Source: Trichoplax adhaerens (taxonomy: Eukaryota > Animalia > Placozoa). Taken from it: 64,000 nt of DNA. The notes under the pieces were generated by a model, which was given only the letters and a program-made list of their open reading frames with translations, did no database searches and was not told the DNA's origin. Of the stretch, positions 2,548 to 46,498 are shown piece by piece; position 1 is the first letter of the stretch, and every line of letters starts with the position of its first letter. The translations under genes and the position numbers were made by a program. The stretch lies in NCBI RefSeq assembly GCF_000150275.1, contig NW_002060944.1, forward strand, positions 8,704,159 through 8,768,158, read 5' to 3'.

Positions 2548-3642
2548 TCATAGATTTAATGTTTTCGTACGTTGATGATGATAAGGGTTCTGGATGTCAT
2601 TAGCAAATATAGGAGATATTTTGTTACCAAATCTTTTAGATGAACAGCAATGTCCAAAGACAGAACTTAGAGGATCTTTAAATTTTTTCATATGTGTAAT
2701 GTAAATGATAGGATGATAAATTGCGACTGCTAACATGAATAAACATAAAAAGGCAAACATAATGGAGATGGTCAAAATAGACATTCTTTCATTGAAGAGA
2801 ATAATACTGACCAAAAATAATAAACACATTGCATCGCTTAAAACTTGCAAGGAGAAAGTAATTTGAAACATATGTACAATGGATTTATTTTTTCCAATTC
2901 TGAATTGTTCGACTCGCGAAAGTCGCTGCTGTCGAAGTCGAAGTCGTAATTGTTGCATTTTCATTGGCGTTAATGATCGATTTTTTAATTTGTGTAGAAT
3001 ACGTGGATAGCAATGTAGTATAGTTACCAGTTGTAGTATATATATTAATGCCGCTGTTGATATTACTAATAGCTTGACGGTAAATCTAGTTGCAATTAGA
3101 CCACATAAACTTTCTATTGGAGGAAATGGACCACTTGTGATAGTTCTTGGCCAAATCATTAGGACACTCACTAGCCAAATTGCTATAATAATTAGTAATA
3201 CGTGAATTCGTTTTAATTTTTCAACCGGTGAAGTTGCAATAGCTTTATAACGCTCGTAGGTAATTAAGACTACAGATAAATTAGATATCATAAAAGCAGT
3301 CACTAACGTAGGTACAACTAATTTGCAAATAAAGATTTGAAAAAATCTTTGATGGAAAATGTTAGTTAAATTTAACGTTGCTCCATATCTTCCCCAAGTT
3401 AAAAAAGTGAATGATATTGTCAAGAAGACGTTCGCCACTGCCAAATTTCCTATGCATATATAAGCCGGTGAACGCATATCTTTGTGGGAAATGATGATCA
3501 TAATTAGATATAAGTTACTGAATAAACCGATGATTTCCAATGGTAGATAGAAAATAGCAACTAATTGGTAGAGAAACAGTGAGCTATTATGTATTATATT
3601 TATATTATCATAAGAATCATTCCATGATGTTAAATTTTCCAT
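2548..3642 (-). CDS. Intronless rhodopsin-like (class A) orphan GPCR, 364 aa
   Basis: Seven hydrophobic segments, N-terminal N-glycosylation sites, TM2 NLAVAN, ERY at the end of TM3, TM4 W, TM7 YHPIIY, and CC in the tail. Confidence 0.93.
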   Translation of the reverse strand: MENLTSWNDSYDNINIIHNSSLFLYQLVAIFYLPLEIIGLFSNLYLIMIIISHKDMRSPAYICIGNLAVANVFLTISFTFLTWGRYGATLNLTNIFHQRFFQIFICKLVVPTLVTAFMISNLSVVLITYERYKAIATSPVEKLKRIHVLLIIIAIWLVSVLMIWPRTITSGPFPPIESLCGLIATRFTVKLLVISTAALIYILQLVTILHCYPRILHKLKNRSLTPMKMQQLRLRLRQQRLSRVEQFRIGKNKSIVHMFQITFSLQVLSDAMCLLFLVSIILFNERMSILTISIMFAFLCLFMLAVAIYHPIIYITHMKKFKDPLSSVFGHCCSSKRFGNKISPIFANDIQNPYHHQRTKTLNL

Positions 3643-12337: not shown

Positions 12338-13447
12338 ATGTTCGTTTGCCAAAAAGGTACAACTACGATTTCAATTTATCACAAGAATGAAACAAGCTTT
12401 AAGTATCCAACGATTTATGACCAATATCTTCAAGCTGCTGTGGTGTTAAATTCTACCGTTGCTATCATTAGCATCATATTAAACACTTATGTTTTACTTG
12501 TTATTACCTATAATAAAACCATGCGATCAGCTGCTCACTTGGGAATGATAAACTTAGCTTTCGCTGGATTGATATGTTCGGCTTCGTTTTCAGCGGCTGA
12601 TGGTATAATATATTACTCTAGTATCAATAAGCTACTACAAGATAAATTAGTTATTGATATTACATGTGGAGTTGCTGTTCCATTAGGTATGTCAGCTTAT
12701 ATGGCCAGTATCGCTACATTAACTTTTATTGCGATCGATCGTTATCGTGAAATGGCTGTACCGTCATCACACAAGTGGAAAAGATGGCAACTATTATTCG
12801 GATTGATTACAGTCTGGCTATTCGGCTCGTCAATAAGCTTTCCGCACGCTCTAAATAAACTCAATTCTCAATCGCTTGTCAAAGCGTGCGATTTATGGGT
12901 TTTACGTTATGATGGCAGGAAAGTTAACCTTTATCTCATTGACATTCCTCTTTTCATACTCTTTTTGATAATGCTTCTCTGCTATCTAAGAATTACGATC
13001 AAAATAAAAAGTACGAACAAAATTTTAGATGCTAATCAAGCGGATGATAATACTATTTCACGAGTAGACGAAATTAGATCGCAACGTAGAAACTTATTAC
13101 TGAAAGTCTTCCTGATCATATCCTTGATACAATTTTTGTTAATTCTTGTATGGCTTGTGATGATTCATGTCCTAGTTTTGGGTTACGACGTTGCTAATAT
13201 CCATTTACTAGGGCTTTTATCTATTATGAATCATACATTTTTGATATGTATGAGTAGTTATAATGCTTTTATTTATATCTATTACTTGGAAAGATTTCGC
13301 TTCTTTGTTGAAAAATTGTTCCCGTGCTGTATGCGCTTAGAAGGTGAGGAACAAATGAACCTAACAAATGATCGAGCACAAAATCCTTATGCGATATATC
13401 AAGGAGAGCCCGATGGTGCAGCCATGGAGACAAACAATGAAAATTAA
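12338..13447 (+). CDS. Intronless rhodopsin-like orphan GPCR, 369 aa
   Basis: Seven TM segments, DRY, TM3 and ECL2 cysteines, TM7 YNAFIY, and CC in the tail. Shares subfamily motifs with the GPCR at 2548-3642. Confidence 0.93.
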   Translation: MFVCQKGTTTISIYHKNETSFKYPTIYDQYLQAAVVLNSTVAIISIILNTYVLLVITYNKTMRSAAHLGMINLAFAGLICSASFSAADGIIYYSSINKLLQDKLVIDITCGVAVPLGMSAYMASIATLTFIAIDRYREMAVPSSHKWKRWQLLFGLITVWLFGSSISFPHALNKLNSQSLVKACDLWVLRYDGRKVNLYLIDIPLFILFLIMLLCYLRITIKIKSTNKILDANQADDNTISRVDEIRSQRRNLLLKVFLIISLIQFLLILVWLVMIHVLVLGYDVANIHLLGLLSIMNHTFLICMSSYNAFIYIYYLERFRFFVEKLFPCCMRLEGEEQMNLTNDRAQNPYAIYQGEPDGAAMETNNEN

Positions 13448-16400
13448 AGATATAATTGTAATATAGCAATAACTGTGTAGCTAGAGTAAATAATGATTCG
13501 ATATTCATGAACGTAATATTACACAAAATATGGATAGAGCATCCTTTGATCGATGATAATATATTAAGACCGTTCTTGTCAGGTACAAAGCAACTATCTT
13601 ACGAGGAATACTTTAGATCATGTATGCAAATGATATACGTACTGCACGGTATTGTATATTATAACTACCCTATACTGGCACAGTTTTTGTAAACTATCCA
13701 AAATTGTTGACACAATAATTAGATGGCTAAAATTTTCGATTTCTATGAATTGCATTGTTTTATTCATGTTAAGGTATGAATACTGCATTAGCACTGAGGA
13801 ATTTATTGTCAGCGATATTGAATGTCTACTGTATGATATTAGTGAAGTTAGATCTAAGTTCATACATTTACTACAGCATATTTTTTTTTATAATATATCA
13901 CAATAATAATCTTTACTAGTTATCTCAAATGGCCTACGGCTAGTGCAGTAAGATGTAGATTTAGTCACATCTGAAATCAAAAATTCCTGGTCTATTGAAT
14001 TTTTATATACTGTAGCTGCTCGATTAAGCCGTAATATATATATTCTACGAAAATTCTTGTTTCTTTCGATAGGTCGTCGAAATAAAGTAGGAGGAATGAC
14101 AGCCTCGAGTTGATATTTATTTCATTCCTTTATTCCAATGTTTCGCTTTGAATTTAATCCGAGCAAAATTTCATAATATATGCATGAGGTTGTGTGAATA
14201 TCCATCCAAAAAAGAATAAAATATCTAAATGATTCAATTATTTCTTAATTAAAAATCCGGCAACATCTTTGTATGGCGAATATAATATCATTTATCATAA
14301 TATAAAATTTTGCGATTCTCTTTTGTCGTCGATTATATTTCCAGTTACACATTAGCTATTAATGCTTAAAGATTACAAATTTTTTCAACTGAATTTCGTT
14401 ATGAAATATTCAATTTATTTTAATAGTACTTTATCCATTCCCACTATCGAAGTTTGAGACATTGTAAATATAATAAAATGTTGCCTTTATGATAGATAAT
14501 CATGAATTCATAAATTTTTTGCGATGAATAACTCTGCATAGTATGCTGAGATTTTCCGGGTAATAGAAGCAGATTTTTTACGCTCCGTTTTTACATTTTT
14601 TTCTATCGAGCTATATCCAAACTTAATCTTAGATTCCTTCTACTGATTATGCAAGAATAAATACTAATTATTCATAATAAATATTTACCAATTTGACAAA
14701 GATAGGGCTGAAATTTATTAAATTCTCGTTTTAGTAGTGCAGTATACCAGTATTTCAAAGTGTAGGTTTATAATTTTATAGTTCATATTATTAACCTATA
14801 GATAATTTGGAATATCCTGATTGTATCTACGCTGTTATTGAAAAATAGTTGTGTCTTTATGATACTCTGTCCCAATTACGAGATTTTAATTGGTTCGATA
14901 AAAATTTATGATGCAGTAAGGACATGGCAGAAATGTTTGTAGGTACATTACAGTACAGCACGTACACATGATTTCGAAAATTTTACATAATAATCCCAAG
15001 GTAGTGGGGTGTGAGTGACAAGGTAATAACGTATTTTCTATTTATTATTTTTATATTTGTGACGTTCTATAAATAAGTACTTATTTCAATAGAAATTTGT
15101 TAGCAGTGTGTAATAGAGCGTAAATCCAGTTTACTTCTATTTCGATCGGCGGAATCTATCTAACAAATCCCTTTACACCCCCTTATGATACTTGAAGCAC
15201 AGATGAAAAATATCCTTGACATTTGGCAGCGCACCTCAAATCATGATTATCAGCCATATGAATATTGATTAAGGTATTAAAAATAAAAAGGATCTAAATG
15301 AAGACTATAATAGTCAGGAATGAGATCGACATGAGAGATAAGTATTGATTCAGAACAGAAGTCATGAATTTAAAGGGTATAGCTCATATGATGCAATAAT
15401 GTAGCATAGCTGGTTGAATGGACGTCAATAACTTACCTAGTCGGCTGCCCTTGTCAATTGTATAGTTGCAGTATTTTATCAATTTATCTTGCAAAGTACA
15501 ATCGGGAACATGCACTACTGAAAAATCTTCTTTTAAGACTTCACGATGTGGAATTAGTGACCTTGAGGTTGAGTTATTTGGGCATTCATATGGGTGTACC
15601 GATTTTTAAACTGATAGCAATAGTTTAAAAACAAAATATTGGTGCTGAGTGATTTAGGAGAACAAGTTGACCGTATACTAGTGTACAGCCACTGCATATT
15701 TTTATTACTGTACTAGTACTACAGATTACGGTTTACAAATACGATACGCATTACGCCGTTATAATTAATAGTGAGTAGAAATATATGATAATTTGTTTAT
15801 TTAATATAATTATGTAAATTTATGATTGCGCAATTTGCATTTGTATCTAAGTATAGAAGTACAATTTGCCTTGCATATTTTCTTATACAGTAAAATTTAA
15901 AATTTTAAGATTATCTTTATTACCATTGTCAGTAGATCAGTGTCACCGTAAATTCTTTAACATATGCTTTAACATGCTTTTGATTAATTAATATGATCAA
16001 TAAGACTGTACCTCGTCGGCTCGAGTGATGCTTTCAGCAAAGTCTTGCGAACACTATTAACTGTAATCGGCGATCCAATTTAAAATTGTTTCAGTTTTAT
16101 CGCAAATCATAATTTACAATGTAATGTTTATAAACATAGCAGTAAAAATAATAACTTTGGTTTTATCATTGTTTCTACTGATGGCAATAAATGAGAGTTG
16201 ATTATATGAGACTAACTTTCTTTTTTACTCGTATTTATTACGGTAATTTGCAAAATAATAGATTTATCAATTATGTTTTGACGCGGATTACAGTAAGATG
16301 AGATTCCCCACGTATCGCTTGACATTTTATGGTAATTATGTATCTCCTAAAATTCTATTTATTCTACTTTAGCTAATTAACGGCAATAAATAATTTAATG

Positions 16401-16469
16401 TAATGCAACTACTGTACTTAATAGGATTATACTTAATACGGTATAGAAAGTGATAATAATTCTCAATAG

Positions 16470-17393
16470 CTATGCCTTATTAGTACGATTTAGAAGATTT
16501 TGAATGAGTGTTGCGAGGTTATGAGCACAGCGACGATCGAATCGAAAGAATAGTTCAGGCTCTAGTATTTCGAACTCTGATAGTAGTAATTGATTTTGAG
16601 AGTCGTATATAGCATCTACTCGAGCGTAAGCCGGTTTAGTCCTGCATTTCTCTACAACATTTTCGGCAAAATGACGTTCCTGATCCGATGCAGTATATGG
16701 AAAGACATACCCTCCATAGTCGTCTTGAATCTTAAATTCTCCTTTTTTAGCTACTTTAAGTACACTATGAGTTAGTTTACCATCGATGACCACAAAGGAC
16801 ATTTCGCCTTTTGTAGTATAAGCTTCCATAAATGGCTGGGCAAGCAATTCCTTCTGTGATATCAAATCTGTGAGAATACTCTTGTATTCATCGATTTCAT
16901 CGCGTTTTATCTTGAAAGTATTTTTGGCAGCAGCTGACACAGCCGGTTTAACGACTATAGTTTGTGTCTGGAGTTTATTAAAGATATTATCAATATTTCT
17001 TAGATCATTATTGCATAATTTTATCGTTTCCACGATAGGAATTTTCTTTTCTTGGAATTCAAATAAGTAATTTTTGTCTATATTCCACAAGCATAGATCT
17101 GCTGAATTAATTAAAATCGTCTTTTTCTCTGTTAGATGTATCCATTCTTTAAAACTTTCCCAATAATCGGAATAGTTCCATGTAGAGCGAATGATAGCAC
17201 AGCGTACAGTCTCCCATTCGAATGGAATATCCCAAGCAACACGTATTGCAGTTAATCCCACATTTCTTAGGCAATGGATGAGTAAGCTTTCTTCAAATCT
17301 AGACTGGATACGGTAGAAATCGTGATCGGGTAAATCTTGAAACCGGCTACTGTTACAAGATTCGGTTACAATTGCTACGTCAATCATTGTCAT
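16470..17393 (-). CDS. ATP-grasp ligase, DcsG/RimK/glutathione-synthetase-like, copy A (intronless, 307 aa)
   Basis: Motifs IRSTWNY, WNIDKNYL, VVKPAVSA, AQPF..GEMS, QDDYGG, YARVD and EFEILEPELF, typical of the bacterial DcsG-like ATP-grasp family. Confidence 0.88.
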   Translation of the reverse strand: MTMIDVAIVTESCNSSRFQDLPDHDFYRIQSRFEESLLIHCLRNVGLTAIRVAWDIPFEWETVRCAIIRSTWNYSDYWESFKEWIHLTEKKTILINSADLCLWNIDKNYLFEFQEKKIPIVETIKLCNNDLRNIDNIFNKLQTQTIVVKPAVSAAAKNTFKIKRDEIDEYKSILTDLISQKELLAQPFMEAYTTKGEMSFVVIDGKLTHSVLKVAKKGEFKIQDDYGGYVFPYTASDQERHFAENVVEKCRTKPAYARVDAIYDSQNQLLLSEFEILEPELFFRFDRRCAHNLATLIQNLLNRTNKA

Positions 17394-18373
17394 TCACGAT
17401 TCGTTTTCTTTTTCCTACACAATATTTCGACAATCAAATACTACGGTGCTACACTAGTTAATTAATTAAGTTAAGCCTTCCAGCGCTTAGTACTATCCTT
17501 AAGAAGAAATTTTTCAAAAACTAAGCGATTTTTTTAGCTTTAAAACCTTGCAAAGGAATAATGGATAGTGCTGGAACTGCAGGATAATGTCCATCTTGTG
17601 CGTTATTCGAAGACGGTTCGTTTGGAACCACTTTCATACCGGGTAAAATTTATTGTTTATATATAACAGGCTGGCGTTACCGACGTTGGCTGTAACATAT
17701 TGTGTTATTATATAATTACGGTATGCTAGTCCTATAATTATAATCCGTGGCGTGGCTAACAGACTGTGACTAATAGCGATGTTGGCCGTAACATATTGTG
17801 TTGTATCACACCAGCTTGCAAGAACCTGCTACTTCTCATCGCTGGAACAGCTCTATCCGTTCTCTTGTCCAAATTGAATATAATAATTAAATTTCATGCA
17901 GTGTCAGCCTTGTGTAGTGACAGGTATTTGCAAGCAAGGGTAAGTACCGTCCTGGACCATGATACAGTGTAAAAGAATAATTTGCTTCGCATATTTCCTT
18001 ATACCGTAATATTATTTAACTTCAGGGCTAATCATATTAATTATATAATTTTTCATCATTGTCAGAAGGATCAAAGATGGAAAGTAGCAGTCATGATTTT
18101 ATTATTGCATCGAATGATGACGGCAATAAGTATCAATTTATAATTACTTTGTTTACGCAGTTACTCAAAAGTTACTTGAAATTGATTTTATTTAAGTACG
18201 GAAATACAGAGTATGCAATAACTATGCATTCATCTTTCATTATAATTTACGCTGCATATCTATAGACTTGAATCAAACTATTATACGTAAACTATAATTT
18301 AAGATACTGCAACTACTTTGTATGATTATACTTTATATCGTGTGTAGAGTGATAATTATTCTCAATAGTTACT

Positions 18374-19294
18374 TTATACCTTATTAGTACGATTAAGAAT
18401 ATTTCGAATAACTGTTGCGAGGTTATCTGCACATCGTCGATCGAATCGAAAGAATAGTTCAGGCTCTAGTAGTTCGATCTCCGTTAAAAATAATTGATTT
18501 TGAGAGTCGTATATAGCATCTACTCGAGCGTAAGCCGGTTTAGTCCTGCATTTCTCCACAACATTTTCGGCAAAGTGACGTTCTTGATCCGATGCAGTAT
18601 ACGGAAAGACATACCCTCCATAGTCGTCTTGAATCTTAAATTCTCCTTTTTTAGCTACTTTAAGTACACTATGAGTTAGTTTGCCATCGATGACCATGAA
18701 GGACATTTCGCCTTTTGTAGTGTAAGTTTCCATAAATGGCTGGGCAAGCAATTCTTTCTGTGATATTAAGTCTGTGAGAACACTGTTGTATTCATCGATT
18801 TCATCGCGTTTAATCTTGAAAGTATTTTTGGCAGTTGCTGACACAGCCGGTTTAATAACTATCGTTTGTGTTTGAAGTTTATTAAAAATATTATCCGCAT
18901 TTTTGAGATCAGAATTGTTCAATTTTATCGTTTCCACGATAGGAATTTTCTTTTCTTGTAATTCAAATAAGTAATTTTTGTCTATATTCCACAAGCATAG
19001 ATCTGCTGAATTAATTAAAATGGTCTTTTTCTCTACTGTACGTATCCAATTTTCAAAACTTTCCAAGTTATCGATATAATTCCATGTAGAGCGAATGATC
19101 GCGCAGCGTACAGTCTCCCATTCGAATGGAATATCCCATGCAACACGTATTGCAGTTAATCCCACATTTCTTAAGCAATGGATGAGTAAGCTTTCTTCAT
19201 ATCTGGTCTGGATACGTGCAAAATCATCATCTGGTATATCCTGAAATCGGCTACTGTTGCAAGATTCGGTTACAATGGCAACGTCAATCATCAT
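18374..19294 (-). CDS. ATP-grasp ligase, DcsG/RimK-like, copy B (intronless, ~306 aa; ATG at 19294)
   Basis: Tandem paralog of copy A with the same motifs, an intact ORF and alignable flanks. Confidence 0.88.
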   Translation of the reverse strand: MMIDVAIVTESCNSSRFQDIPDDDFARIQTRYEESLLIHCLRNVGLTAIRVAWDIPFEWETVRCAIIRSTWNYIDNLESFENWIRTVEKKTILINSADLCLWNIDKNYLFELQEKKIPIVETIKLNNSDLKNADNIFNKLQTQTIVIKPAVSATAKNTFKIKRDEIDEYNSVLTDLISQKELLAQPFMETYTTKGEMSFMVIDGKLTHSVLKVAKKGEFKIQDDYGGYVFPYTASDQERHFAENVVEKCRTKPAYARVDAIYDSQNQLFLTEIELLEPELFFRFDRRCADNLATVIRNILNRTNKV

Positions 19295-19910
19295 TGACAA
19301 TTTATCTTTTTTAGCTCTACGCGTATTTCACAATCAAAACACTACAGTATTGCTCTAGTTCAACAAGAACGCGTCTAGAAATCATTCAACTGCGAGCAAT
19401 CGTACAGTACAACAGAGGATTAGCAGTTTATTTCATTTATTCTATAGCACAGTTCACTTTGCAGACAACTTGACGGATACTTGGTTGCACACAGTAAGTC
19501 AAAAAGTAGATCATTGGAGTTTTGCTGACTGGTGGCTAACAGTAGCTAGGGACGACAACTAGTCGTGCCCAGCGGGAAGGAAAATGGATCACGATGAACT
19601 CTGCATAGCTCATACAGTACAATATGGAGCTTGCTGCCACTATTGTTATACAAAATACAGTACAGTATTGCATAAAGTTGCATCACTTGCTTTTACTATG
19701 ACAACATACAGTACGTACAGTACCGTAAGCCTCAACGGTACAGTACTCGAAAATTGAATGGAATACTGTACTGTGGCCGACAACTGAGCGCTGACCACGC
19801 TGACAATATTCTGAGTACTATATATTCACTGCCACCAGCCTCCTGTAGTCTTGGCAATCTTCTAGATAGATCGAGTGACATGATTTATTAGGGATTTGTG
19901 GATGTCCGAC

Positions 19911-20240
19911 AGACAGGTTAGGAAGACATATATCTAGGAGTACATATCTTCCTAACCTATCCAATTATATATGATTATATTGATTTAAATTATTGTTCTT
20001 AATTGATAATAAATAGTGAGTCTATGTTGTCATGTACTATAGATTGTTATGCTATAATGTTTATTGCCATGTACGATCGGACAGGTTAGGAAGACATGTA
20101 TCTTGGGGAGTACATGTCTTCCAACTTGTCAGATTATATTTATTTAATAATAAAATAATTGTTCGTTATTACTAATCAATAAATGATGAGCCTATGTAGC
20201 CATGCAGATTGTTATGCTATAATATTGATTGTAATGTGGA
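19911..20240. repeat. Two diverged ~168-bp tandem units, each beginning with a ~50-nt hairpin
   Basis: gacaggttaggaagacat...atRtcttcc(t)aac at ~19912 and ~20080, each followed by an alignable AT-rich tail (agattgttatgctataat). Confidence 0.8.
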
Positions 20241-21823
20241 TACTAATATCAGGAAGATAAATTTGGGTTTGCTCATTTTACTGATATACTAAGTACCGTA
20301 TTTTGTGAACATGAGGAATTAATTGAGGTTCATTAAATGCAAGCTGTGCGAGCTGTACTTACTGGATATCATTAGTGCGATTTTACCAGCACAGTCACAA
20401 CGGCTGTCTGACAAACAGTTTCATCGATCTGCAAGATCCGCTCAGATGATATTTTCATCGCCAATACTGTTTGCATGCATGTTAGTGAATAAATGGCCTG
20501 TATTGATGAATGATGAAGTCTTTGACTAGTTATAACTTTCGCAATCGTCATAAATACAACTGAGTCCTCTAGAAGTATGGCAATACTCATACCATGATAT
20601 TTACTGTACTGCATAAGTGCATATTAGTGCTCTGTAATCCCACTTGGACTAAATCTCACTAATCGTTACTACGTGTACAGTGCATTTATTCATAACTTCG
20701 GTACAATCGGATACTCAAATTATTTTATGGGTGACCAATATACATGCTCGTATAGAGTGTAGATAAATAGTAATAAAATAAAATTATAATCATTCATTAA
20801 CTGTGAGTCAGTGATAAATTAGACAGTAAAGTACAAGTACTGTACGAGTGTACAGACGAGTATGATATAGTTACTGTAGTAAGCGAACGTATGAGCGCAT
20901 GATAAATCAGCACTTACTTCCAAACCTGCTTCGGGGTTTTATTGCACATCTCAATCAAGATGCAGTACAGTACTATACTATTAAGCATAGGAGTAACGAT
21001 CTCAGTTTTGCTATTATTATACATGAATTCGAAATCGTTACACCGATAATTGCAAGATTTCAAGACATTACTTGGTGAAAACAGGATTTTTACCGAGGAT
21101 AGTACATCAATTAGGCCATTCTTAATTAAAATATATAGCAACAACGATATCAGATAATGATAAGTAGATAACCATTGCAAATTTGAATAGACCTGAAACG
21201 TATACAGTACATACTCAGCAACTACTGTACTGAACATACGTGGAGATGGTACAGTAGTACAGCAAATTGTAACTATGTAGTAACGAATTCAAAGCAAAGA
21301 CATACAAAAATACATTGTATCTAATTATTGTTCTGTATTCTGCAACTTCCAACTACCAGTAAATTATGCAGTATTAAGCAGAGTTATAAGCTTGAATAAT
21401 GAACTTATAAGATAATGATATAATTGAGGAAAACATAATAACGTGAGACAATACTGGCTGCAATGCATATGTTTCGAATGGCGACGTATGGCATAGTACC
21501 ATCAGTAAGCCATCAGTCAGTTACTTCACATCACCGGTTACTGCAGTATAGTGTTCATCAGTGCGCAATGGCTTTACATACAGTAGTTGCAAGAAAGACC
21601 TATCCGTGCAGCATTGCATGCTGATTCAATCCATTTTACTAAATATTCTGCTTTACAAGGTATTACATATGTGTCAATCAAATTGTGTTATCACTTATTC
21701 ATCATCTACTACAACTGTATCACTACTTCATAACCCCTATTTGCAAAATCGGAAAGCCGACTATTTTACAAATAGAAGAAAAAATTTGTCGCTATTAAAA
21801 ATTGCAACTAACTATGAATGCAT

Positions 21824-22192
21824 TTATTTTTGAGGTTGTCCACTTTCCAGTCCTAATTGCTTGAACATACATTCATCATAAGCACGCTGAGAGGGCCGAC
21901 AATATTCAAATTCGTGATTATTGTGATCTAAGCAAGTCCAGTGTTTAGTAAAGTCTTCTCTACAACTGGCGTTGACTTTTTTAAAGAATTCAACAGCACA
22001 TTCGCTTACGCGGCGTCCTTGAGGCAAGCACTTTCTTGGATCGGTGGTTTCGTAGCGACATAACATAAATTCGTGGTTGGGCTTGTCACAATAATTTCCA
22101 TAATGGTACGCTGCTGCGGCGAGTACGGCCGACGTTACATTGACTTCTTCCACTACCAAGTCTGACACTGGAACATCTCTTGTAGAACTCAT
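21824..22192 (-). CDS. NDUFA8: NADH dehydrogenase 1 alpha subcomplex subunit 8 (intronless, ~122 aa)
   Basis: Four CX9C motifs plus EVNVTSAVLAAAAYHYG and DPRKCL. First ATG at 22192; the ORF track start is a GTG. Confidence 0.93.
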   Translation of the reverse strand: MSSTRDVPVSDLVVEEVNVTSAVLAAAAYHYGNYCDKPNHEFMLCRYETTDPRKCLPQGRRVSECAVEFFKKVNASCREDFTKHWTCLDHNNHEFEYCRPSQRAYDECMFKQLGLESGQPQK

Positions 22193-22419
22193 AACGACTA
22201 TTTCAGATCTTGACACAGCTAAATCACTCTTTGCTGTACGTTAGGCTTGTTCAGTATAGCACATAGGTTTAGAATGAACGACAGCATCCAATGAAGATAC
22301 TTTATTCCCAACTTTGCGCTGCTCTCGATTGCAGACCAGATTCTCAAGATGGCACTCGAAAGCGAGCGTTCTCCAAAGACAAGCGTGACGATGTCTGCAT
22401 CACTGTGTGCACTGCAGTG

Positions 22420-22940
22420 CCGTAGTTTCCACTGTACAATGTACCCTGTAGAGGCCAGGACTACAGTACTGTACTGTACTGTACAGTGCAAGAGGTAAAA
22501 GGAAAAAATTCCACATGAAACTGTACTGTACTGTACAGTACTGTACAGGGTTAGGGTTAGTACTGTGTAATTTGTAATTGACATACTGTACTGTACTGTA
22601 CACGCTGTAGGATTCTGAACCCAACACGCTAACATACTGTACTGTACTCGAACTGACGCCTGCGCACTTTGTCACTAAGAGTTTGTTGTAAATACAGTAC
22701 AGTAGATTATGCAGTTGCAGTGTTGCACAAATCCGTACAGTACTACTACACGGAGAAAGGATTCTGAACCCAACACGCTAACATACTGTACTGTACTGTA
22801 CTGTACAGTACACAACGTACAGTACAGTACAGTACTGTACAGTACATGTACGGTACTGTAGCCCTTATTACTGTACTCGAACTGACGCCTGCGCATTTTG
22901 TCACCAAGAGTTTGTTATTGATAAATTATGCAGTTGCCAT
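22420..22940. repeat. TACAG/TACTG pentamer arrays within a local duplication (units start at ~22611 and ~22760) in the NDUFA8/IFT54 divergent intergenic region
   Basis: The repeated backbone gattctgaacccaacacgctaaca...ctcgaactgacgcctgcgca..ttgtcac.aagagtttgtt is interrupted by variable pentamer runs. Confidence 0.9.
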
Positions 22941-28502: not shown

Positions 28503-29112
28503 GTACGTGCAGTACAGTACAGTACTACAGTGTACAGTATGTAGAAATGCTTTTTTCACAACTATACTGTACAGTTCCAGATTCTGCGCTGTAAAAAAGT
28601 TGTCGCTTTCGGGCCACCGTAGTGTACTGTACAGTACTGTACTGTACATACAGTCCACAGCGCAGTACTGTACACTGTAGTGGAAGGTTGACATGTCCGT
28701 CCGTACTGTACCTCCAGTGTTACGCAGGAACATCAGTAGATTCAGTTCTGTAGCACGTACAGTACAGTACATACTGCTCTCTGTGTGGATTCTACTGTAC
28801 TGTACTGTACAGTATACTGTAGGACTGTAGAAATTCTTTTTTCACACCTGTACAGTACAGATTCTGCGCCGTAAAAAAGTTGTCGCTTTCAGGCCACCGT
28901 AGTGTACAGTCCACAGTACTGTACACTGTAGTGGAAGGTTGACATGTCCGTCCATACCGCACCTCCAGTGTTACGCAGGAACATCAGTACTGTAAGTTTT
29001 GTTAGTTCTACTGCACTGTACAGTACTGTACACTGTAGAGTACAGTACAGTACTGTACTCTACTCCTCTCTGTGTGGATTCTACTGTACTGTACTGTATA
29101 GGACAGTAGAAA
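28503..29112. repeat. ~280-bp tandem duplication (units start at ~28541 and ~28827) studded with TACAG/TACTG arrays
   Basis: Duplicated backbone gattctgcgc.gtaaaaaagttgtcgctttc.ggccaccgtagtg...ggaaggttgacatgtccgtcc...ctctctgtgtggattc. The copies differ mainly by pentamer insertions. Confidence 0.9.
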
Positions 29113-45496: not shown

Positions 45497-46498
45497 ATGA
45501 ACGAATCTAGCGAAAATAACACCATCGATTATGAACTAATTAATAGCATAGCATTTCTATCGGCTATTCCGATCACTATTATTGGCTTAGTAGTGAATTT
45601 ATTCATTCTTTATATTCTCATCTCAGATAAAAATTTTCATAAAACTACTTACTATCTAATACGATTCTCCGTTCTATCTGATATCGCGTCCACAGGCGCA
45701 TCTAGTTTATCTTTTACTACTGGATCCGTACTGCAACTGCAACTCTATCAAGGCACAATACTTTGTCGCATGTTCATTTTCATCATTCTGGCATCATATG
45801 GCGTATCGATGATGACATTATGCATTATAAGTGCCGATCGTTACATGGCGATTGTTAAACCAATGTCTCAATTCTATCGTCGATATAAGAAACTTATCAT
45901 CTTCCTATTACAAATGGTAGTTTGCTGTATATCGCTTGTAATGGCAATACCAGCTTTACTATTTATAGGTACTTATTCTGATGATACGAAATTTTGTGAT
46001 TTTCCTACCGTAACTTCATCAACTGCCCTATACTTTATCATGAGTTCGATTGTATTATATTTTATGCCAGTAACCTTCTTAGTAGTGGCATACTGTAAAA
46101 TTATATTCCACATGAAAAATCATATTAGGCCACCTGGATTATCAGTTCAACAAGCGGCCGAACGAAATCTAAAGAAACGAAAATTTATTCAATCCTTGAT
46201 GTCTATCACAGCCGCGTACGTATTAACTACTTGGCCATTTTGGGCGACAAGTATAGGCATGGCAATCACACAAAAATCAATGCGCCAAATTCGCCAGCTA
46301 GGTCTATTCTGGTATCTTTTAGCATTTGCATCATTCACGGTAACTACTTCAATTAGTGTGGTTAATCCTTTTCTATATTTAAAATTTGATAGCAATATCA
46401 GAAAAAAAGCAGCAGCTCTACTGAAGAGGTCAGCTGATGCCAATGACTATTATAATCCATCAACTCGAATAACAGTTATGACTCAAAACACAGTATAA
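45497..46498 (+). CDS. Intronless rhodopsin-like orphan GPCR, 333 aa
   Basis: Seven TM segments, TM2 SD, TM3 C, DRY, ECL2 C, TM6 WPFW and TM7 NPFLY. Confidence 0.95.
   Translation: MNESSENNTIDYELINSIAFLSAIPITIIGLVVNLFILYILISDKNFHKTTYYLIRFSVLSDIASTGASSLSFTTGSVLQLQLYQGTILCRMFIFIILASYGVSMMTLCIISADRYMAIVKPMSQFYRRYKKLIIFLLQMVVCCISLVMAIPALLFIGTYSDDTKFCDFPTVTSSTALYFIMSSIVLYFMPVTFLVVAYCKIIFHMKNHIRPPGLSVQQAAERNLKKRKFIQSLMSITAAYVLTTWPFWATSIGMAITQKSMRQIRQLGLFWYLLAFASFTVTTSISVVNPFLYLKFDSNIRKKAAALLKRSADANDYYNPSTRITVMTQNTV

Follow-up and report, generated by a model that had tools for sequence, protein, structure and literature searches.

Here, we describe a tandem pair of intronless, bacterial-type ATP-grasp ligase genes, designated copies A and B, in the nuclear genome of Trichoplax adhaerens, and consider it likely that they stem from an ancient bacterium-to-placozoan transfer, followed by duplication in the Trichoplax lineage and by selection for a soluble ligase. 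In our model, a placozoan ancestor would have gained a stand-alone DcsG-like ATP-grasp ligase gene from a bacterium; the gene would have inserted beside NDUFA8 in the nuclear genome, taken on the base composition of the host and remained intronless under purifying selection. A block of approximately 1.07 kb would then have been duplicated in tandem in the Trichoplax lineage, giving rise to the two copies.

Results

A tandem pair of ATP-grasp genes among animal genes

The pair lies in the window, the whole 64-kb stretch of DNA that was analysed. Copy A (positions 16470-17393, minus strand) is an intronless coding sequence of 307 amino acids with an ATG start, classified as DcsG-like by a PF27100 DcsG_N domain together with a GSH-S_ATP/RimK ATP-grasp domain. 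Copy B (18374-19294, minus strand) is likewise intronless and encodes 306 amino acids from the ATG at 19294, within an open reading frame (18374-19300, minus strand) that opens at a TTG at 19300. The two proteins were 89% identical over 305 amino acids without gaps, and each aligned end to end with bacterial homologues of approximately 300 amino acids, so that no intron is needed. These results confirmed the original prediction of two intact, intronless ORFs of approximately 307 amino acids.

The predicted position of the pair between a GPCR gene and NDUFA8 was borne out by domain and chain matches. Directly upstream lies an exon of NDUFA8, a complex I CHCH subunit (21824-22216, minus strand; CHCH domain, E = 5e-38 against NDUFA8 chains), and on the other side lies a rhodopsin-family GPCR gene (12338-13447, plus strand; PF00001 7tm_1, 69.3 bits). 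Other parts of the window contain additional GPCRs and one exon each of Rhomboid and SRCR/EGF type. The AT content is host-like, as had been claimed: both copies have a GC content of 36.5-36.7% and a GC3 of 0.32, compared with a GC3 of 0.26-0.37 in neighboring host ORFs.

The unit of duplication comprises the coding sequence with approximately 66 nt upstream and 80 nt downstream. Comparison of the units by blastn, together with direct repeats (families D1 and D2), delimited it to 16390-17459 for copy A and 18294-19360 for copy B, both on the minus strand, and the two units were 87.6% identical at the nucleotide level over 1077 columns. The spacers of the two copies did not align outside this block; hence, the flanks described earlier as alignable are so for these short 5' and 3' stretches but not for the remaining spacer.

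Candidate poly(A) signals (AATAAA) were read from the sequence 107 nt past the stop codon of copy A (16358-16363, minus strand) and 182 nt past that of copy B (18187-18192, minus strand); both are weak candidates because the DNA is AT-rich. Look-ups for transcripts of the two copies retrieved genomic contigs only. No intrinsic terminators were found at the locus, and sigma-70-like sites near the two copies were not above shuffle expectation. The TACTGTA motif, which occurs host-wide, clusters in the spacer upstream of the ATP-grasp genes.

The locus is conserved in other placozoan-type assemblies

We considered whether the genes could derive from bacterial contamination or an assembly chimera, for example from a rickettsial endosymbiont or food bacteria, given that endosymbiont scaffolds are known to be present in the Trichoplax assembly (PMC3641634). 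Against this explanation, the pair is located 8.7 Mb into a 9.7-Mb scaffold with animal genes around it and shows the host-like GC3 described above, while the nearest bacterial protein is just 43% identical. These two copies are the only ones in the 105.6-Mb assembly, and no further copy was found on its small scaffolds or on its endosymbiont scaffolds. A current rickettsial endosymbiont was also considered as the donor and was not supported, since the assembly includes endosymbiont scaffolds without a further copy.

An independent assembly, GCA_003344405.1 (contig NOWV01000014.1), which represents Trichoplax sp. H2 (PMC6057997), carries the same tandem in a collinear arrangement, with 99.3% nucleotide identity over 6.9 kb. 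In addition, a diverged AT-rich contig, L003, carries NDUFA8 followed by a single ATP-grasp orthologue, P0003, with 60% amino acid and 69% nucleotide identity. Positions 232-730 of this contig matched the NDUFA8 segment of the window (22204-21706) at 78% nucleotide identity, and the order and orientation relative to the ATP-grasp gene were conserved; L003, as well as L004, is labelled placozoan on the basis of synteny, nucleotide similarity and AT-richness. The genes are therefore physically linked to bona fide host genes in independent assemblies, in agreement with the earlier assessment that contamination is unlikely, and we assign contamination or a chimera a negligible probability. Trichoplax and at least one further placozoan lineage most likely separated after the transfer.

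The placozoan genes branch among bacterial sequences

An exhaustive search of 1.84 billion cluster representatives returned 5556 matching representatives, in which the placozoan cluster itself scored 682 bits and the next one 238 bits at 43% identity; no relatives between 43% and 60% identity were found among these representatives. The closest non-placozoan relatives were 36-43% identical, and each one that was checked resided in a dense bacterial gene context. In the Atlas, the 30 nearest clusters were without exception 100% Bacteria, and homologues were present at no fewer than 580 loci in bacterial species genomes from many phyla. Caulobacter vibrioides, too, has a member of the family. An IMG/VR scan for a viral route yielded no relative.

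The nearest bacterial proteins are uncharacterised and of DcsG_N/RimK type, and include those of the alphaproteobacterial metagenome-assembled genome (MAG) OFTM257, Pleionea mediterranea, Prosthecobacter, Thauera and Gemmataceae, all 36-43% identical over the full length. They are encoded by stand-alone genes for approximately 300 amino acids and share the inserts and invariant residues of copies A and B. These inserts, one N-terminal and one of five residues, are features of the subfamily to which the two copies belong, and the family's other branch has neither of them. The settings differ, in that the bacterial genes sit in dense neighborhoods of 36-66% GC, whereas the placozoan genes sit on a long branch and in sparse, AT-rich animal DNA.

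In our trees, four placozoan-type sequences formed a clade (support 100/100) with a long stem (0.8) among bacterial sequences of one subfamily. This clade fell inside a mixed bacterial group with an SH-aLRT of 97 in the quick tree and support of 87/96 in the careful tree, a placement within bacterial sequences to which a composition-bias warning applies. Its sister group consisted of alphaproteobacterial MAGs from two lineages, with weak support (UFboot 95, SH-aLRT 57) in a tree whose bootstrap had not converged; every sequence involved in this placement was flagged for AT-biased amino acid composition. Given the weak sister support and the biased composition, we do not name a donor.

Under vertical inheritance, the ancestor of eukaryotes or of animals would already have had the gene, and placozoans would be almost the only sampled lineage not to have lost it. 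The long placozoan stem allows for great age, but the gap in the search between 43% and 60% identity, the exclusively bacterial nature of the checked relatives and Atlas neighbors, and the position of the clade among, not outside, the bacterial sequences of one subfamily all argue against this scenario. Moreover, most Trichoplax genes have introns, whereas the ATP-grasp genes have none. We thus regard vertical inheritance as improbable, and, as judged from the cluster searches and the gene contexts that were checked, the gene may be absent from other animals and eukaryotes. The initial proposal of an old horizontal transfer with subsequent duplication finds support in the fully supported placozoan clade among bacteria and in its distant closest outsiders, bacterial wherever checked.

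We also grouped the flanking ORFs of 33 bacterial loci, 107 in total, by clustering and observed that neighbors recur only within closely related genera; these loci revealed neither a neighbor shared across phyla nor a conserved operon partner, so that the substrate is not inferable from gene context. Spot-checked bacterial neighbors belonged to unrelated families, namely LysR, an AhpC/TSA-type (thioredoxin-like) redoxin, Diphthami_syn_2, DUF3467 and Ysc84.

Both copies retain catalytic-type residues under constraint

Residues K106, K148, Q185, E196, H208, K212, R257, D259, E272, E274 and E277 are kept in copy A, copy B and P0003. Among them, K106, K148, R257, D259, E272 and E274 are invariant across the family, and by analogy with Ddl and GshB we take these six to be phosphate-binding lysines and Mg ligands. 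Of 40 near-invariant residues of the bacterial family, copy A retains 37 and copy B 38, including all catalytic-type ones. The dN/dS ratio was 0.22-0.26 between the two copies and 0.17-0.19 between the copies in the window and P0003. The pattern indicates that purifying selection has kept both copies.

Alternatively, the transferred ORFs could be relics that have stayed open by chance and no longer give rise to an active enzyme. In a related sequence, P0004, the frame remains open although glutamates of the Mg-ligand type and further invariant residues have been lost, showing that a gene of this family can decay while its frame stays open. However, both Trichoplax lineages have kept two frames of approximately 920 nt intact, and a further intact frame persists in a lineage whose dS is saturated; together with the dN/dS values (0.17-0.26 across all comparisons) and the 37-38 retained invariant residues, this renders a non-functional relic an improbable explanation. 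The description of the genes as domesticated is supported at the level of sequence constraint (dN/dS of approximately 0.2 and retained catalytic residues).

The proteins are DcsG-like members of the ATP-grasp superfamily

Copies A and B matched the Pfam models GSH-S_ATP (PF02955; 32.8 and 31.4 bits, respectively, cut-off 23) and RimK (PF08443; 25.4 and 27.7 bits, cut-off 21), and PF27100 DcsG_N is among the precomputed Pfam domains of copies A and B and the H2 copies, from which the assignment is taken. Every motif quoted in the original prediction was present (RSTWNY, WNIDKNYL, KPAVSA, YARVD and E.E..EPELF). The AF2 model of copy B (pLDDT 94.9, pTM 0.92) retrieved at least 500 ATP-grasp chains at E < 1e-3 using Foldseek. 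Its best PDB match was DcsG (6jil; TM-score 0.83-0.87, 21% identity), which was also the best match by sequence (E = 1e-14), followed in the fold comparison by ArgX/LysX, RimK, PsnB, Ddl and GshB. Domain scores, the three-domain alpha/beta fold and conserved residues thus place both proteins in the ATP-grasp superfamily, and the proposed membership in the family that includes DcsG is correct at the level of a DcsG-like ATP-grasp protein according to Pfam, NCBIfam and the PDB sequence and fold matches.

Against the NCBIfam DcsG equivalog NF058666, copy A scored 118.5 and copy B 129.1 bits (118 and 128.7 in the genome search), well below the cut-off of 360; we therefore refer to the proteins as DcsG-like and not as DcsG. 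NCBIfam glutathione synthase models gave 27-34 bits against cut-offs of 272-408. RimK, LysX-ArgX and GshB share with the two copies the Lys / Arg-x-Asp / Glu-x-Glu(Asn) nucleotide- and Mg-binding pattern, with a TM-score of 0.72-0.76 to the model and 12-14% identity, and, unlike LysX and RimK, the copies show no sign of a relationship to the LysW carrier protein or ribosomal protein S6. PADLOC returned no defense-system match for the ATP-grasp genes.

We next weigh whether the animal might produce D-cycloserine or a close analogue through the DcsG reaction itself. Among characterised proteins with a solved structure, the closest relative is DcsG, the O-ureido-D-serine cyclo-ligase of Streptomyces (PDB 6JIL); it resembles copies A and B in its size of approximately 300 amino acids, its three-domain ATP-grasp architecture and PF27100, and yields D-cycloserine by ATP-dependent heterocyclisation (PMC9298251). 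Nevertheless, at 21% identity the animal nuclear genes reach only one third of the equivalog cut-off, and they belong to a large subfamily with its own N-terminal and five-residue inserts that, unlike DcsG, is distributed widely across many phyla and has no dcs-type cluster or other conserved biosynthetic neighbors around its bacterial members. Since the copies fall into a different subfamily without such a cluster, their substrate probably differs from that of DcsG; a D-cycloserine precursor is an unlikely substrate, and a true D-cycloserine synthetase is a very improbable reading.

The activity, substrate class and expression of the two copies are predictions. As a transferred and selected ligase, each protein would be a soluble enzyme that lacks an N-terminal extension, binds Mg-ATP between the central and C-terminal domains and converts a carboxylate of its substrate into an acyl-phosphate by phosphorylation. 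This intermediate would then be attacked by a nitrogen nucleophile, either intramolecularly, in the manner of DcsG, or from another molecule, in the manner of GshB, RimK and LysX, leading to an amide or cyclic amide. A small, amino-acid-like compound is the probable substrate.

Discussion

Placozoans, which rank among the simplest animals, feed by grazing on microbial biofilms and harbor bacterial endosymbionts. It is conceivable, although on balance rather unlikely, that the ligase pair makes a placozoan-specific small molecule that acts against bacteria, controls symbionts or serves as a signal, and that the duplication reflects divergence in substrate or cell type. Such a molecule could possibly be a cyclised or N-acylated amino acid derivative, perhaps from a D-amino acid by analogy with DcsG, or a short non-ribosomal peptide; the small-peptide or defense-metabolite product first proposed for these genes is speculation.

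The pair offers an animal route into a very large uncharacterised bacterial enzyme subfamily with thousands of cluster representatives, whose sole studied relative, DcsG, makes the antibiotic D-cycloserine. Identification of the substrate would give this bacterial family a function and could reveal a placozoan-specific metabolite.

Twelve bacterial transfer candidates have been described for Trichoplax adhaerens, namely dapF, murA, BPL_N (two), rsmE, PhrB (four), GNAT (two) and MhpC (Driscoll et al. 2013, PMC3641634); the ATP-grasp gene is not in that list, and in the accessible literature we found no paper linking Trichoplax or placozoans with a DcsG-like ATP-grasp gene. The pair thus represents an additional well-anchored bacterium-to-animal transfer that is conserved between lineages and constrained. 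Anthozoans carry a transferred ATP-grasp gene of the mycosporine-like amino acid pathway (PMC3640398), which, like copies A and B, is an ATP-grasp ligase gained by a non-bilaterian marine animal. The pair also resembles other such transfers in being intronless bacterial-type enzyme genes in large eukaryotic scaffolds. The pair differs from other bacterium-to-animal transfers in that it shows no rickettsial signal, does not belong to a transferred pathway of several genes and appears older than the divergence of Trichoplax from another placozoan lineage.

Two intact ATP-grasp genes reside in an animal locus

The minus strand of the window carries two open frames encoding ATP-grasp proteins, copy A at 16470-17393 (307 aa) and copy B at 18374-19300, where an ATG at 19294 gives a protein of 306 aa. 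The proteins are 89% identical in a gap-free alignment, and because both align end to end with bacterial proteins of ~300 aa, we consider the genes complete and intronless. Every motif quoted in the original prediction was found in these copies, and the placement of two intact intronless ORFs between a GPCR and NDUFA8 was confirmed by the ORFs, the end-to-end alignments and the domains of the neighbours. As judged from their encoded domains, the ORFs around the pair belong to animal genes. Rhodopsin-type GPCRs lie at 2548-3642, 12338-13447 (plus strand) and 45497-46498, NDUFA8 lies at 21824-22216 (minus strand; matching NDUFA8 chains of complex I at E 5e-38), and one Rhomboid exon and one SRCR/EGF exon lie elsewhere in the window. 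Copies A and B have a GC content of 36.5-36.7% and a GC3 of 0.32, inside the 0.26-0.37 of neighbouring host ORFs, bearing out the predicted host-like AT content; this base composition differs from that of most bacterial homologues.

The window spans 8.70-8.77 Mb of its scaffold, and a search of the 105.6-Mb, 1414-contig genome recovered these two ATP-grasp copies only. Contamination or chimerism, anticipated to be unlikely, was dismissed because the same tandem recurs in Trichoplax sp. H2 (NOWV00000000; PMC6057997), a lineage whose genome was sequenced and assembled independently. The H2 assembly (GCA_003344405.1, NOWV01000014.1) encodes an identical copy A protein with a second copy ~1 kb upstream in the same orientation, and a 6.9-kb stretch is collinear with window positions 13470-20388 at 99.3% identity.

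The genes probably derive from a bacterial enzyme family

The DcsG-like family, related to the D-cycloserine cyclo-ligase DcsG, was found at no fewer than 580 loci in bacterial species genomes, spanning Pseudomonadota, Verrucomicrobiota, Planctomycetota, Bacteroidota, Myxococcota, Gemmatimonadota, Actinomycetota and others. An exhaustive search of 1.84 billion proteins returned 5556 cluster representatives (E<=1e-3), with the placozoan cluster at 682 bits followed by a drop to 238 bits and 43% identity, and each of the nearest 30 ESM-Atlas clusters was 100% Bacteria. All near relatives whose DNA was examined sit in dense bacterial context, one of them on a 5.8-Mb contig, with neighbours including GcrA, RelA/SpoT, LysR, TetR/AraC and RadA/DisA. 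No viral relative was found in an IMG/VR scan.

The phylogeny against bacterial homologues was run as a quick tree (130 rows) and a careful tree (79 rows, LG+C20 PMSF). In both, copies A and B grouped at 100/100 with two AT-rich relatives, P0003 and P0004, in a clade whose stem was long (0.6-0.8) and which fell among bacterial sequences, with 98 SH-aLRT for a 7-row set (quick) and 87/96 for a 31-row set (careful). Two MAG lineages of Alphaproteobacteria were the nearest neighbours, supported at only 95/57, with the amino-acid composition of these rows flagged as biased and the bootstrap unconverged; for these reasons no donor is named. The genome-wide search, which yielded only the two copies in the window, gave no sign of a present rickettsial endosymbiont as donor. 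Collectively, the trees, the sister relationship of A and B and an orthologous locus in the P0003 lineage support the proposed old horizontal transfer followed by duplication, and the genes represent a well-anchored, supported case of a non-bilaterian animal acquiring enzyme genes from bacteria.

Driscoll et al. (2013) reported 12 genes of bacterial type from the large scaffolds of T. adhaerens, namely dapF, murA, two BPL_N, rsmE, four PhrB, two GNAT and MhpC; the ATP-grasp gene is absent from that list (PMC3641634), and our literature search found no mention of it.

Predicted fold, active site and chemistry

Both copies matched the Pfam GSH-S_ATP and RimK ATP-grasp models above cut-off, and precomputed annotation adds PF27100 (DcsG_N). 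The top NCBIfam model was the DcsG equivalog NF058666, with far lower scores for the glutathione synthase and Ddl models, and the sole PDB sequence match was DcsG (6JIL, E 1e-14). A confident AlphaFold2 model built from a 72-sequence alignment (pLDDT 94.9, pTM 0.92) superposed best on DcsG (TM 0.83-0.87, 21% identity), followed by ArgX/LysX, RimK, PsnB, Ddl and GshB. DcsG itself was ruled out by this 21% identity and by NF058666 scores of 118-129 bits, where the cut-off is 360.

Forty columns are conserved at >=90% in the alignment's 68 other sequences, which were bacterial in every case checked; 38 of these columns are retained in copy B and 37 in copy A. Both retain K106, K148, Q185, E196, H208, K212, R257, D259, E272, E274 and E277, which we take, by analogy with Ddl and GshB, to include the ATP-phosphate-binding lysines, the Arg-x-Asp pair and the Glu-x-Glu Mg ligands. 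From sequence and model, the copies resemble active members of the DcsG-like group of ATP-grasp ligases.

As in a generic ATP-grasp reaction, such an enzyme would use Mg-ATP to form an acyl-phosphate on a substrate carboxylate, which a nitrogen nucleophile would then attack, yielding an amide or a ring. No neighbour genes were conserved across phyla among bacterial members, and PADLOC gave no match; context therefore indicates no substrate. We expect a small, amino-acid-like substrate by analogy, since the nearest relatives of characterised function (DcsG, GshB, LysX/ArgX and RimK) all use amino-acid carboxylates. D-cycloserine synthesis by these copies is highly improbable, and the products suggested in the original prediction, a small peptide or a defence metabolite, are speculative.

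Across 14 well-known control genomes, a sub-threshold DcsG-model match occurred only in Caulobacter vibrioides, so this uncharacterised family has a member in an alphaproteobacterium amenable to genetics.

Both copies have been retained since an old duplication

In the trees, A and B were sisters (99-100), as were P0003 and P0004 (96-97), and the Trichoplax duplication is therefore younger than the split from the P0003 lineage. With dS between A and B at ~0.25-0.28 and nucleotide divergence between H1, most likely the lineage of the window, and H2 at 0.7%, it long pre-dates the H1/H2 split. The duplicated block of ~1.07 kb (16390-17459 and 18294-19360, minus strand) comprises the CDS with ~66 nt of 5' and ~80 nt of 3' flank and is roughly transcript-sized; unequal crossing-over is one candidate mechanism for the duplication. 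Identity between units is 87.6% overall and 93% in the final 300 nt of the CDS, a pattern that may reflect local gene conversion. Comparing copies A and B gave a dN/dS of 0.22-0.26, and comparing them with P0003 gave 0.17-0.19, against 0.08-0.10 for NDUFA8. These values indicate purifying selection on both copies since duplication.

The ~0.9-kb spacers beside the units did not align to each other. The spacer immediately upstream of copy B holds a loose eight-member cluster (19343-19770) of the heptamer TACTGTA/TACAGTA, which was counted 119 times across the window where 14.7 would be expected (0/100 shuffles reached this count), with dense arrays at 5-nt spacing at 22.4-22.9 kb (22460-22875) and 28.5-29.1 kb (28513-29098) and others scattered.

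Relatives at an orthologous locus and in marine biofilms

P0003, the closest other protein (60% aa), is encoded on L003, a 4.2-kb, 35%-GC sequencing-run contig on which a homologue of NDUFA8 (78% nt, 82% aa) is followed by the ATP-grasp gene (69% nt), with order and orientation matching those of the window. On this arrangement and similarity, the locus is orthologous to that of the window, at a distance where synonymous sites are saturated (dS >1). The window NDUFA8 ORF covers only ~residues 10-116 of the ~172-aa animal protein, and nucleotide similarity continues ~118 nt beyond its stop (window 21706-21823; L003 613-730), giving 78% over 499 nt in all; this extension is probably a conserved downstream exon, intron boundary or 3' UTR.

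P0004 (53% aa to the window copies, 65% to P0003) is encoded by an open 304-aa frame standing alone on two 32%-GC, ORF-poor contigs (L004 1794-2708; L005 1777-2691) from marine-biofilm metagenomes (PMC6355793). A marine biofilm is a plausible pick-up site for grazing placozoans, making P0004 a candidate placozoan sequence. Thirteen of its 40 conserved positions are changed, including W71C, Y73N and, at the Glu-x-Glu Mg-ligand positions, E272D, E274K and E277K. P0004 is probably catalytically dead, and likely represents an inactive paralogue or a gene in decay or shifting function.
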